NCBI RefSeq assembly: GCF_001194135.2
Contig: NC_068981.1
Coordinates: 198,081,981-198,131,634, forward strand
Length of the DNA: 49,654 nucleotides
Reading direction: 5' to 3'
Origin: Octopus bimaculoides
Taxonomy: Eukaryota
Each line of letters starts with the position of its first letter. Position 1 is the stretch's first letter. Of this stretch, positions 16,170-20,878 are shown piece by piece. The notes under the pieces are model-generated. The model did no database searches. It worked only from the letters and a program-made list of their open reading frames with translations, and was not told the DNA's origin. The translations under genes were made by a program, and so were the position numbers.

Positions 16170-16269
16170 CTGAGACTCTCCTGCATTATTTTCTTCAATC
16201 TCTTTCTCTTCTTCTGTTTCAATTCCAGAACAAACATTGATCAGTTGGTCAATGCATTCTGTGACAAAT
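16170..16269 (-). CDS. Exon j: end of the talin bundle (R)FVTECIDQLINVC, then SGIETEEEKEIEENNAGESQ
   Basis: Acceptor gttgttgttacag, donor CAG|GTGAGT, 100 nt, phase 2-0. Matches talin AVTDSINQLITMC. It is not in the ORF track. Confidence 0.9.
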
Positions 16270-16964
16270 CTGTAACAACAACAACAACAACAAACTGCAA
16301 ATACTATCTACAATTACACATACATCACACTATGTACATCATCATCATCGTTTAACGTCCGTTTTCCATGCTGGCATGGGTTGGACAGTTCGACTGGGGT
16401 CTGGGAAGCCAGGAGGCTACACCAGACTCCACTCTGATCTGGCAGAGTTTCTACAGCTGGATATCCTTCCTAACGTCAACCACTCCGAGAGTGTAGTGGG
16501 TGCTTTTTACGTGCCACCGGCACAGAATCCAGTCAAAGTGGCACTGGTATCAGCCATGTTCAGATGGTGCTTTTTACATGCTCACAACTACAATATATAT
16601 AATATGTATACGTGCATGTGTATATATCATCATCGTTTAACGTCCACTTTCCATGCTGGCATAGGTCGGACAGTTTGACTGAAGGGTGGCGAGCTGGAAG
16701 GCTGGACCAGGCTCCAATCCGATCTGGCAAAGTTTCTACAGCTGGATACCCTTCCTACTGCCAACCACTCCGAGAGTGAAGTGGGTGCTTTTCACATTCC
16801 ACCGGCACAAGGGCCAGTCAGCCAACACTGGCATCGACCATGCTTGAATGGTCTTTTTTTATGTGCCACTGGAATGGGACCAGTCAGGCAGCACTGATAT
16901 CAACTACGCTTGAATGATGCCTTTTACTTGCCACTGGCACGAGTGCCAATCAAGTGGTACTGTC

Positions 16965-16997
<33 letters not shown>

Positions 16998-17489
16998 TAC
17001 ACATACACAGTGAATAGATTGTCTAAATTATGCAAAAATGAAAATAATACTGACATCTCATTTTCATCACATTAATTTCAATAGCAAGCTGGTTCTATTG
17101 ATTGCATCAGCTGGGACCCTTATCATCATAACCGACATCCGCCTTCCATGCTAGCATGGGTAAATAATATTGTTTCATAAGTAAAGAATGGTTTAATAAG
17201 CAATGATGTCTGGAAGTTATCTCATTGTTTAGAGTTCCTGGATTAAATAACAGCAGGAGTTGCATGGCTCCACTGTATCATGTACAAATGTATGCTTTTG
17301 GCATGGCTTCTACAGTTGGATGCGCCTCCTAACAGCAACCATTTGAGAGAGGGGACTGAATGCTTTTCTTTATGTCACACCTCAGTGGTTTTGGGACACT
17401 TAAAACAGTTCAAGTGTATCAACTGAATTGCTCATGTGTGTGTAAATTATTACAGGCAATAAAATTAAATTGATTTTATTAGGTTTAGA

Positions 17490-18985
17490 GAAAATGCATC
17501 AACAATCTAATCAGGTATATTTATGATACTTGATGTAGAGAAATCCTTTGATAGAGTAACCCTCTGTGTGATATGATGGGCTCTGAGGAGGTTAGGGGTA
17601 GATGAATGGGTGGTGAATGCTGTACAGGCCATATACAAAGATGAGATGAGGTGAGGTGAGAGTTAACCACAAGTATGGCAAAGAATTTGGTGTACAGGCA
17701 GGAGTTCATCAAGGCTCACACGTCAGTCCCGTCCTTTCCATCTTTGTCCTCCAGGCCATAACAGGGGAATTCAAGACTGGCAGACCCCGAGAACTACTAT
17801 GCTGATGATCTTGCCCTCATAGCAGATTCCATATCATCCTAGTAAGCAAGAAAATGGACAGGACTCTACTCCCCGCTTAGGTAGGTGGCCCTGTTCAATT
17901 TGTAGGAAAGGTGTAGGCAGGAACTCCATACTGTGCACCCAGTGTAAGCTATGGACAAACACAAGGGGTAGTGGAATAATAGGAAGGTTATCTGAGAATG
18001 CAGTGTTCATATGTGGATGCACAGGATCCATAAAAACTATTGAGACTTGGGAAATTGATTCTCTCAGATGACCTAGTAGCTCATTAGAGGTAGTAGATAA
18101 TTTCTGCTACCTCAGGGACCAAATTAGTAGTGGGGGAGGATGTATGGAGAGTGTAACAGCTAGAATAAGAATAGCATGGAAGAAATTCAGAGAGCTTTTA
18201 CCTCTGTTGGCCCCAAAAGGTTTCTCTTTCTGAGTGAAAGGAAGATTGTATGATGCATGTATGTGGACAGCAATTCTACATGGTAGTGAGAGATGTGGGC
18301 CTTGAATGCAGAGGGCATGTGAACATCAGAAAGGAGTGAAGCTAGTACGTTCTACTGTATGTGTAATGTAAGTTTACATGTTCAACAGAGTGCTAGTATA
18401 TTGAGAGCAAAGTTAGGCATAAGAGGAATTGGTTGTTGTGAGCAAGAGAGAAACCTGTGCTGGTTTGATAATGTGACGCGGATGGAGGCCGACAGCTCTA
18501 TAAAAAAGCACTGATCTCTCAAAAAAGATGGAACACGTGGAAGCAGGAGACTCAGGAAGACACGGGACCAAGTACTGAAGGACAACCTCAGGATGCTGAG
18601 CCTTTTGGGTGAAATGACAAAGGACCGAGTTACCTGGTACCTTGCTGTGCTCAAGAAGACTAATATTTCACAGCTGAAGTGTTAAGACTGGTTCCCCTGG
18701 GGAAGAGGATTAGCCTGCAAGAGTCCTGTGCTAATGGTATGCAAAAGCACCTGTGCAATGCCACATAAAAACACTCATGTGACACCATGTAAAAGCACTT
18801 GTGCCAGTGCCACATAGAAAGCACCCAGCACACTTTGTAAAGCGGTTGGTGCTAGGAAGAGCATCCAGCTGTGGAAACCAGGCCAAATCAGGCTGGAGCC
18901 TGGAGCAGCTCACCTGCTTGCCAGCTCTGGTCAAGCATGCAACTCATGCCAGCAAGGACAATGGACATTGAATGATGATGATGAG
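17490..18985 (+). mobile_element. 5'-truncated, degraded RTE LINE (RT, PHD insert, C-terminus, UTR, tail)
   Basis: GVHQGS, LLYADDLALIA, GRWPCSICRKGVGRNSILCTQCKLW and AWKKFRELLPLL motifs with multiple stops. Confidence 0.85.
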
Positions 18986-19418
18986 TGTAAGCTTAAGAGA
19001 AGAGGGACAGAGAGAGAGAGGTGTTAGTATGAAATATAATAATTATTGATATTTTGGCACGTTAAAAGTACCATCCAAACGTGGATGGTGCCAGTACCCA
19101 CTGACTGGCCCCTGTGCTGGTGGCACGTAAAAACCACCATCTGAATGTGGTTGATGCCAATACCCACTCACTAGCCCCCGTCCTGGTGGCATGTAAAAAG
19201 CACTATCCAAATGTGATTGATGACAGGCTTCTGTGCCTGTGGCATGGAAAAAGCACCCACTATACTCTCAGAGTGGTTGGCATTAGGAAGGGCATCCAGC
19301 TGTAGAAACATTGCCACAACAGATTGGAGCTTGGTACAGCCACTGGCTCTCCAGACCTCAGTCAAAACGCCCAACCCATGCCAGCATGGAAAACAAATGT
19401 TAAACGATAATGATGATG

Positions 19419-20281
19419 AGGGTGCCTAAAAAATTTGACATCATTTGAGATGTCCATATTGGAGTGACTACATGGTCAAGAGAAATGAAAGTCGATAGGC
19501 TTAATTTTGAACATAACAAGTCTTATTCTAGAGATTTCCAACGAAAAATTCTGTGAGATGATTATTTATAAGGTGGGGCAGAACACCCTAATTCAATTTT
19601 GGCGAGTCCCTTCCATGTTCAATTGTGTCATTTGGATTTTCTTTGCCCCCAAATGCAAACATTTTGCTTGTTCATTTTGCCATTCATATGTTCTGTAGCT
19701 TTGTCACTGAAAACAAGATGGTTTTCAAAGTCGTCATCTTAAAATTTCTCTTTCATATCTTCACAGAATGTTTTACACTTTTGCTTTTCAACCAGCTTTA
19801 AAGTCTGCACAAGCTGAAGCTAGTAGGGGGTCAGCTGCAAGGATTTTCTTATGACATGCCAAACAATGGACTAGAAGAGCCGGGTTTCCAGACTTGCTCT
19901 TCGCACAGATTCCTTTGGACTCCGACTAAATGTTTCCCAAAGTTGGTTGACCATCTCTTCTGAAACTGTCGGCCGTCCAGATCCTTTTTTCCAACACAAA
20001 CAACCTTCTTCTTGAAAGTTCTTGTGCCACATCTAAATATACTTCCCTCTTGATATTTGTTTATGAAATCTAATAAATACATGTTGCACATTCACATTTG
20101 ACTGAGTTTGGGCATACTTCAATACACAAAATGCCTTTTCTCTTGCAGTAAACGGCATGTCTAATCTTGAAAAGAAAAACCTATGAAAGATCATATTTTA
20201 AAAATGGATTGAATTCTAGACATACTGCTAAAATTTGAGACAATTTGGACGAAATGATGTCAAATTTTGGGGGACACCCTG
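19419..20281 (-). mobile_element. Internally deleted Tc1/mariner transposon
   Basis: Terminal inverted repeats (c)agggtg.c...aaaatttgacatcattt at both ends, with TA after the right end. Transposase remnant DDDFENHLVFSDKATEHMNGKMNKQNVCIWG / ENPNDTIEHGRDSPKLN. Confidence 0.85.
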
Positions 20282-20561
20282 TATATAGGCACAGTATGAG
20301 CAATGCTGATTAGATCAACCCTAGTTTATAACTGGTACTTATTTTATTGACCCTGACAGGATGAAAAGTAAAGTTGAACTTGGTGGAAACAGAATGCAGA
20401 ACATAAAGACATGATATGCCACTAAGCTTTTTGGCCCCGAGCGCTTAACGATTCTGCCAGCTCACTGCTTGGATTATTGTCACGTGATTGTTTAACATGT
20501 GACACATAACGAATTCCACCAAAAGAACAAAATTAATGGTAAAACCAAACTGAATTCCTAC

Positions 20562-20878
20562 CTTGCTGCACCTGAGAGTTTGTTCTTTGCACTGTGGTCA
20601 GTTTGGTCAGTGGAGACAGCATTGGCAACCAGAAGCAAACGACTTGAGACATCAGAGATGCTGTCAAGTTTCTCCATAATTTGTGTCTTGGCAGTTAGGT
20701 CGGGTGTCATATCAGCAACAAGTCCTACGCTGCTAACAAATTCTTCATAAGCATTCTTGTACAAACCTGACGATTCAATAAGGTAATCAGACGGTTGGCT
20801 GGAACAAGCAATAATTTTACTTGCTGCCATATCCAAGTTCTTTGCTGCGGAGCTCATCCGTCTTAAGGATGACGTTCG
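20562..20878 (-). CDS. Exon i: talin-rod R6-like helices RTSSLRRMSSAAKNLDMAASKII...ISDVSSRLLLVANAVSTDQTDHSAKNKLSGAA(R)
   Basis: Acceptor tttttagtatttgcag, donor GCAAG|GTAGGA, 317 nt, phase 0-2. Aligns without gaps to recalled talin-1 AAAGLNQAATELVQAS...ISMSSSKLLLAAKALSTDPAAPNLKSQLAAAAR. Confidence 0.9.

Follow-up and report, generated by a model that had tools for sequence, protein, structure and literature searches.

The window analysed here, a 49,654-nucleotide (nt) stretch of Octopus bimaculoides DNA, is part of the gene LOC106881714. Two of its exons, here called T1 and T2, encode a helical module that resembles the R6 domain of the talin rod and is spliced in frame into an ankyrin-repeat protein related to ANKRD26. 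The best overall explanation, to which we give a probability of about 0.72, is that the module derives from talin R6, entered an ANKRD26-like host gene by exon shuffling, functions as a folded docking domain and is handled as a spliced cassette. Literature on ANKRD26 together with talin, on talin exon shuffling and on cephalopod domain shuffling yields no description of this architecture, in line with an earlier note on the window that knew of none. The sequences are public under uninformative or misleading names; the combination of a talin bundle with an ANKRD26-like scaffold is undescribed.

Positions below are those of the whole window, and the talin module and the host-gene exons all lie on the minus strand. 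The parts of the module are as follows.

20562..20887 (-): talin-like exon T1, 326 nt, phase 0 in and phase 2 out
20849..20878 (-): RTSSLRRMSS motif, basic and serine-rich, at the N-terminal edge of the module, with RxxS and RRxS patterns
16224..16269 (-): talin-like part of T2, (R)FVTECIDQLINVCSG, the end of helix D; talin-1 equivalent AVTDSINQLITMC
16170..16223 (-): remainder of T2, acidic tail IETEEEKEIEENNAGESQ, not talin-like and predicted disordered; exon end in phase 0

T1 encodes YLQRTSSLRRMSSAAKNLD...KNKLSGAA(R), that is, bundle helices A-C and the start of helix D, and matches residues 675-783 of XP_014787678.1 at 100% (tblastn). The earlier note had described two in-phase talin-like exons, 20878-20562 and 16269-16170. 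Both are present. In these versions, with a caret marking the splice site, the splice sites are canonical for T1 (...tttgcag^CGAACG...GCAGCAAG^gtagga) and for T2 (...ttgttacag^ATTTGTCAC...GAGTCTCAG^gtgagt; quoted ends ttacag^ATTTGT...CTCAG^gtgagt), and the two exons join in frame 0 into 139 amino acids (aa), RTSSLRRMSSAAKNLD...SGAAR^FVTECIDQLINVCSGIETEEEKEIEENNAGESQ. The start given for T1 was 9 nt short. The residues Y-L/F-Q precede RTSS in all deposited protein models, in the Argonauta model and in cuttlefish mRNAs, so splicing uses the acceptor ttttag^TATTTGCAG at 20887, likewise in phase 0, and 20878 is an in-frame AG 9 nt inside the exon. T1 (326 nt) and T2 (100 nt) together make 142 codons with phase 0 at both ends, and these outer boundaries match the upstream exon end at 22928 and the downstream exon start at 12629.

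The module matched talin-1 R6 (PDB 2L10) with an E value of 1.8e-14 when PDB sequences were searched with phmmer. In full-length talin-1 (6R9T), residues 1240-1355 were matched ungapped at 49.7 bits, and other rod regions scored 6 bits or less. The ungapped match covers 115 residues. The earlier note had given a gapless alignment to about residues 1240-1355 of talin-1, and with this E value the alignment is correct and far beyond chance. We also ran an exhaustive HMMER scan of 1.84 billion representative proteins with the module. It gave 37 matches, 36 of them genuine, and all of these were talin R6 regions or fragments. The top match (P0001, 6,382 aa) was rejected as spurious, as its mucin-like repeat "TECVEQWIKVCA" matches 13-30 residues, 14 times. 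A word-indexed protein search with the 139-aa module returned no match though the database contains the protein, which reflects a limit of the index and not absence.

Over about 115 ungapped residues the module is 33% identical to R6 of human talin and 38-43% identical to R6 of the mollusc type. The closest R6 sequences are P0003 (43%), which closely resembles scallop talin, and a Pecten maximus talin-1-like protein (38-39%). With a profile built from talin R6 and the module, the octopus module scored 147 bits and the cuttlefish module 93 bits. The Pfam model PF21896 (Talin_IBS2B) has a cut-off of 27 bits; the isolated module scored 27.5 bits and the full-length O. bimaculoides protein 20.4, and the model was not reported for the full-length O. 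sinensis, Argonauta and cuttlefish proteins. The domain thus lies under the Pfam threshold in the full-length protein and marks a blind spot of annotation. No FERM head, 13 rod bundles or I/LWEQ domain was found, Pfam giving only ankyrin repeats besides the marginal R6. The earlier note saw no other talin-like exon in the 49 kb. Tblastn with eight talins agrees, with none in the window, the 72-kb Octopus gene or the Argonauta locus. Judged from these sequence comparisons, the resemblance to talin is genuine and specific to R6.

An assembly artefact does not account for the module. GAB1597449.1, the orthologue in Argonauta hians, is encoded on a 74.6-kb stretch with no N, and its exon order (linker exon, T1, T2, the cassette exon Ef, next linker exon) is identical to that of the Octopus window. 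A contig of 6,219 nt from SRR7369732 carries a single uninterrupted open reading frame (ORF) of 1,888 aa with the module in frame, and we take it as mRNA for that reason. It is one of five similar contigs of about 6.2 kb, each with one uninterrupted ORF of about 1,890 aa and the module in frame; they are assigned to cuttlefish because a protein of Acanthosepion (Sepia) pharaonis falls in the same 90% cluster as theirs (P0048). In the chromosome-scale assembly of O. bimaculoides the N gaps are identical to those of the window, hence it gives no independent check of placement. The earlier note had named gaps on both sides of contig 11846-20985, and these are present at 10879-11845 and 20986-21972. 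It had also named two outcomes that would overturn its reading. A misplaced contig fails on the gap-free Argonauta locus, which preserves the exon order, and constant skipping of the exons fails on the cuttlefish transcripts, which contain both.

The window corresponds to a reversed stretch of CM046601.1 (GCA_001194135.2) between two gaps. A search with the concatenated exons led to the O. bimaculoides UniProt entry A0A0L8FR86, whose cluster holds XP_014787678.1 and two further isoforms. XP_014787678.1 is deposited as "uncharacterized protein LOC106881714". The host protein consists of N-terminal ankyrin repeats, a long acidic disordered linker, the talin-R6-like bundle and a C-terminal coiled coil. 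The host exons that bear on this layout are listed here.

46112..46345 (-): ankyrin-end exon, in which the ankyrin repeats finish and the linker begins (WTASDHALIKGYNSCVQLLENYQK...)
22928..23271 (-): acidic-linker exon upstream of T1, ...NMASIKVDQEE; its phase-0 end is spliced to T1
12507..12629 (-): Ef, a 123-nt cassette exon that starts and ends in phase 0, VNEGFLFVKDSQLSRSMGELRQSYLYEPDSDGNVVEEEDSV
6615..6955 (-): linker exon that follows Ef, EPFSEDKVDANMKN...
665..797 (-): coiled-coil exon, the first one in the window, DPTSAAKLQQYIYDCRQRLKKEKNQRTLIENQYRVLQEDNKNMQ; alignable to the start of the CCDC144C-type coiled coil of gastropod ANKRD26-like proteins

Generic many-ankyrin proteins aside, the best matches outside cephalopods were ANKRD26-like or CCDC144C proteins of Patella, Littorina, Haliotis and Dreissena, at 35-42% identity over residues 35-500. 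Residues 35-500 of the Argonauta protein are 32-42% identical to gastropod and bivalve ANKRD26-like proteins, and the coiled coil also aligned, colinearly. With hhalign, the cephalopod C-terminal region matched the gastropod and bivalve CCDC144C region at 99.7% probability (E 5e-26, 604 colinear columns), values that coiled-coil composition can inflate. The Pfam model CCDC144C (PF14915) found no match in the cephalopod proteins even at E up to 10, whereas gastropod proteins scored 143-244 bits. The description of the host as ANKRD26-like therefore stands on the colinear ankyrin and coiled-coil alignment to molluscan ANKRD26-like proteins and not on the Pfam CCDC144C model. We consider the label reasonable at the level of molluscan orthology, with the defining Pfam domain formally not passed in these sequences. 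ANKRD26 and ANKRD26-like proteins have the same ankyrin block, acidic disordered linker and C-terminal coiled coil as the cephalopod host, but only the cephalopod proteins have the talin module. Vertebrate ANKRD26 recruits PIDD1 at centriole distal appendages (PMC7883297) and takes part in plasma-membrane clustering (bioRxiv 10.1101/2021.05.19.444897). A centriolar role of the cephalopod host, and with it the link from centriole to adhesion that the earlier note proposed, draws no support from the data considered here.

RefSeq names the O. sinensis isoforms of this one gene [quoted passage not shown], "golgin subfamily A member 4-like" and "ankyrin repeat domain-containing protein 26-like" (among the orthologue records P0045, P0164-P0169 and P0047). 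Pfam found no calponin-homology domain in these orthologues, and the names mirror coiled-coil composition. The O. bimaculoides models are about 1,131 aa long, and those of O. sinensis, Argonauta and cuttlefish 1,750-1,890 aa. In the 75.7-kb O. bimaculoides locus (L001) a 4-kb gap at 68596-72607 lies near the 3' end of the called gene, which ends inside the locus. The C-terminal coiled coil is therefore probably truncated in the O. bimaculoides models.

The module is carried by four of the four deposited O. bimaculoides protein models, six of the seven O. sinensis RefSeq isoforms, Argonauta hians and the cuttlefish mRNA contigs. The chimeric order of ankyrin repeats, acidic linker, talin bundle and coiled coil that the earlier note had proposed is thus seen in octopus models, in Argonauta and in cuttlefish mRNA contigs. 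Among the non-cephalopod proteins retrieved by the full-length query, neither the module nor the R6 profile matched any ANKRD26-like, ANKRD36B or CCDC144C protein of Patella, Littorina, Haliotis, Dreissena, Batillaria, Aplysia or dog. The earlier note had said that vertebrate ANKRD26 has no such domain, and the same holds for the gastropod, bivalve and dog ANKRD26-like proteins sampled. As the module occurs in octopods and cuttlefish and not in gastropods, bivalves or dog, its insertion is placed in the coleoid ancestor or earlier within cephalopods.

The intron inside the module points to the manner of its origin. In a talin exon on contig L003 the donor CG^gtcagt falls inside the Arg codon of "..AAR", and the T1 donor AG^gtagga falls in the same codon. 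The starts of the two exons, both in phase 0, lie within four codons. Among invertebrate talin exon fragments, many terminate exactly at "...AAR". A split of AAR with the position and phase of a talin intron points to genomic exon shuffling. T2 continues with talin sequence for 15 residues and then runs into its acidic tail. Two adjacent talin exons may have been copied as DNA, together with the intron between them, into an intron of the host gene. Truncation of the second exon by a new donor, and the gain of its acidic tail, would have followed. On the sequence comparisons made here, such a duplication of two talin exons with their intron is the simplest reading of the origin.

Talin R6 is a five-helix domain made up of residues 1206-1357 (PMC3605642). 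Since the match starts only at 1240, the module lacks the first R6 helix. What the earlier note called an R6-like bundle accordingly holds for the last four R6 helices, and the first of the five is absent. AlphaFold2 folded the module with short flanks into four helices, with a predicted local distance difference test (pLDDT) score of 87-95 in the core. The top Foldseek match in the PDB was 2L10, the R6 of talin, with a root-mean-square deviation (RMSD) of 1.0 Å over 119 columns, covering 119 of the 158 residues of 2L10. Subsequent matches were other talin bundles, TLNRD1 (PDB 6XZ3, 6XZ4) and FAT domains. In a longer construct with Ef, AlphaFold2 retained the confident four-helix core and left all else disordered. 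We considered Ef as the missing fifth helix and rejected it, since AlphaFold2 leaves Ef unpacked with a pLDDT of about 40. The module is thus predicted to be a stand-alone four-helix bundle flanked by disorder.

This predicted bundle departs from R6 in several respects. R6 is a five-helix bundle with termini at opposite ends and sits within a chain of rod bundles, whereas the module has four helices, has both termini predicted at one end and stands alone between disordered acidic linkers of a non-talin protein. The internal intron position and phase are common to the two, and in both the last helix has a vinculin-binding-site pattern. The module has in addition the RTSSLRRMSS motif and is an alternatively spliced cassette. 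Talin R8 and the FAT domains of FAK, Pyk2 and p130Cas are, like the module, up-down four-helix bundles with their termini together. Their Foldseek TM-scores to the module are 0.6-0.8, but sequence kinship runs only through talin.

We compared T1 with a genomic contig of a second Octopus species (SRR11869384). There were 21 nucleotide differences, 20 synonymous and 1 non-synonymous, which corresponds to a ratio of non-synonymous to synonymous divergence (dN/dS) of 0.012 at dS 0.33. Comparison of Octopus with Argonauta gives amino-acid identities of 94% for the module, 83% for the ankyrin repeats and about 40% for the flanking linker exons; dN is 0.039 in T1 and 0.39-0.56 in linker exons. By these sequence measures the module is under strong purifying selection, no other part of the protein evolves as slowly between these two genera, and by evolutionary criteria it is functional. 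The degree of constraint on the module implies a specific partner. Ef is 83% identical between Octopus and Argonauta within an otherwise fast-evolving linker (VNEGFLFVKDSQLSRSMGELRQSYLYEPDSD...), and its dS of 0.48 is below that of the neighbouring exons. The RTSSLRRMSS motif is nearly invariant from octopus to cuttlefish (Argonauta HTSSLRRMNS, cuttlefish RTSSLRRMN) and has no talin counterpart (FPRTGKTYPDVQ...). It may be a candidate phospho-regulatory (kinase) site.

The module is skipped in some predicted isoforms, which qualifies the earlier statement that it is spliced in frame; the isoforms compared here are predicted models. In O. sinensis X7 and in three of three O. vulgaris models, ...VDQEE is joined to EPFSKDK..., and T1, T2 and Ef are all skipped. 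Ef alone is skipped in O. sinensis X6 and two O. bimaculoides isoforms. Module-skipping isoforms join 22928 to 6955, and Ef-skipping isoforms join 16170 to 6955. Skipping of the module preserves the reading frame, and because the cassette has phase 0 at both ends alternative splicing can include the bundle or leave it out. A motif search of the cuttlefish mRNAs detected no Ef-like sequence. A further difference lies at about 29850-29870 (-), where two O. bimaculoides isoforms differ by six residues (GDENGT) before AFMDELGLSD, which suggests use of an alternative splice site at or near the exon acceptor.

We propose that the bundle is a folded protein-protein docking module within a flexible linker. 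In a four-helix bundle the two termini lie at the same end and low force is enough to peel it open, whereas five-helix bundles pass force along the chain (PMC3605642). Loss of the first helix would therefore make the copy suited as a side domain, a knob on the side of the flexible linker. The four-helix bundles of the talin rod and of FAT domains bind partners by addition of a helix to the bundle surface (PMC6219721), and the module probably binds partner helices by the same "helix addition". The docking module would be present or absent by alternative splicing, and docking may be regulated at the conserved RTSSLRRMSS. Among octopods even the surface of the module is almost completely conserved, as suits a folded docking domain that has a specific partner.

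Two other explanations would remove the module itself, and both are already refuted. The marginal Talin_IBS2B scores, just above the cut-off for the isolated module and below it for the full-length protein, would suit a chance resemblance of an unrelated helical segment to talin. Such a segment would not be expected to match R6 alone over 115 ungapped residues at an E value of 1.8e-14. Every genuine match of the exhaustive scan was talin R6, the intron position and phase are common with a talin exon, and the predicted fold lies 1.0 Å RMSD from 2L10. We leave chance next to no weight. Contig 11846-20985 might instead belong elsewhere, for example in the talin gene, or the exons might be an unexpressed talin relic in an intron. 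The N gaps bounding the contig would allow this, as would the identical gaps of the chromosome-scale assembly, which offers no independent check. But the exon order recurs in the gap-free Argonauta locus, the module is in frame in the cuttlefish mRNAs and T1 has a dN/dS of 0.012 between two Octopus species. The flanks do not resemble talin, and no further talin exon occurs in the Octopus or Argonauta locus. The artefact explanation is left with a negligible chance.

Talin rod bundles are textbook mechanosensitive switch domains. The module might be a force-gated vinculin switch, in which tension or another unfolding trigger on the linker opens the weak bundle, exposes a vinculin-binding helix and couples the scaffold to actin or adhesion. 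This is close to the adhesion idea of the earlier note. The module retains H27, the last helix of R6 and its putative vinculin-binding site. By helix counting R6 comprises H23-H27, because the vinculin-binding site VBS36 is the last helix of R7 (PMC6001692). The last helix of the module, LSGAARFVTECIDQLINVC (last-helix peptide, KNKLSGAARFVTECIDQLINVCSG), fits the vinculin-binding-site consensus LxxAAxxVAxxVxxLIxxA (PMC6001692, PMC2242828) at seven positions (L1, A4, A5, V8, I12, L15 and I16), and the cuttlefish last helix LLEAARTVTDRINQMIDVC likewise fits. The fit is at least as good as that of the validated talin VBS36 peptide (PMC6001692), and four-helix bundles with termini at one end open at low force (PMC3605642). 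However, the consensus residues also form the hydrophobic core, and their conservation is expected from the fold alone. Many talin helices loosely fit the pattern without binding vinculin, nothing indicates tension on the host linker, and the surface residues, nearly all conserved between Octopus and Argonauta, suggest that it is the folded bundle that interacts. We regard the switch as a live rival but unlikely on balance, and the vinculin-binding pattern as the only hint, at the level of sequence, of a link to adhesion or mechanosensing.

A wider form of this idea is that coleoids made a new switch: a weak four-helix bundle with the R6 vinculin-binding helix, set by splicing, would give a centriole or membrane scaffold a vinculin/actin link gated by force or phosphorylation. 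We hold this to be improbable. The bundle could also act within its own protein, binding a helix of Ef, of the coiled coil or of the ankyrin groove, and so set an open or closed scaffold tuned by splicing. The neighbouring Ef, another alternative cassette, keeps 83% identity from Octopus to Argonauta, and talin rod bundles make autoinhibitory contacts (PMC6219721). But Ef stays unpacked in the extended AlphaFold2 construct (pLDDT about 40), and the cuttlefish mRNAs keep the module with no Ef-like sequence detected. Such an intramolecular regulator seems very improbable.

Several points weigh against the preferred reading, an R6-derived and exon-shuffled docking cassette in an ANKRD26-like host. 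The docking function is deduced from the predicted fold and the conservation alone. The AlphaFold alignment consisted mostly of talin R6, which biases the model towards R6. The intron comparison uses an invertebrate talin exon from a metagenome assembly together with fragment ends, not the Octopus talin gene, and the cephalopods sampled were Octopus, Argonauta and cuttlefish, not Nautilus, squids or Vampyroteuthis. The cuttlefish module is 44% identical to that of octopus, with three deletions of 5-8 residues; judged from sequence, perhaps only octopods are under the strong constraint, or the module may serve different functions in different lineages. The O. vulgaris models and O. sinensis X7 are without the cassette, so it is dispensable in some isoforms.

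To our knowledge, TLNRD1 is the one described reuse of talin rod bundles outside talin. TLNRD1 and the module both place talin rod architecture outside talin, but TLNRD1 derives from R7R8, which make up essentially the whole protein, and bundles actin (bioRxiv 10.1101/2020.05.19.103606, PMC8287531; PDB 6XZ3, 6XZ4). The module derives from R6, as a single bundle embedded in an ankyrin/coiled-coil scaffold, and unlike TLNRD1 it is restricted to the coleoid cephalopods sampled. If the switch reading were true, it would be a second, independent reuse of the talin rod outside talin, after TLNRD1. We regard the origin proposed above as a clean, datable and well-supported case of exon shuffling, in which a talin bundle was trimmed from five helices to four and moved into an unrelated scaffold, and the domain concerned is rare outside talin. 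The module has stayed nearly unchanged across the Octopus-Argonauta divergence, slower than the host's own ankyrin repeats. It would serve as a natural experiment on the capabilities of a lone R6-type bundle, and it offers an opportunity to ask whether the vinculin-binding-site helix works outside talin. It also alters, in one lineage, a protein family that vertebrate work links to centrosome surveillance and thrombocytopenia.

The introns of the window are rich in repeats. Long (CT)n/(GA)n and (AC)n microsatellites and homopolymer-rich tracts lie at 22070-22760 (-) and elsewhere, with translations such as SLSLSL..., HTHTHT... and IYIYIY.... The tract at 22070-22760 follows the gap 20986-21972, stands just downstream, in gene orientation, of the exon ending at 22928, and probably caused this gap. 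At least 10 copies of an interspersed repeat, whose translation contains "...PCQHGK(R/Q)TLNDDDD", are scattered through the introns on both strands. The repeat is probably an octopus element of high abundance that resembles short interspersed nuclear elements, and it accounts for many of the long spurious ORFs. The repeat copies and the retroelement-like remains are as follows.

46453(-), 44222(-), 41137(-), 37735(+), 34311(-), 19379(+), 16661(-), 16376(-), 7574(-), 1113(+): interspersed repeat copies
29186-28601, 38819-38649, 45276-44854 (-): intronic retroelement-like ORF fragments, found by motif recognition

Pfam gave no significant match to the transposon-like intronic ORFs and only a weak C1/PHD-like finger. 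In one fragment a Cys-rich finger comes after a motif, "...LLYADDLVFIAE", that looks like part of a reverse transcriptase, and another fragment has "LLYADDFV". The third, "CVYFIPCSCGKLYKGET...", resembles the GIY-YIG endonucleases of Penelope-like elements.

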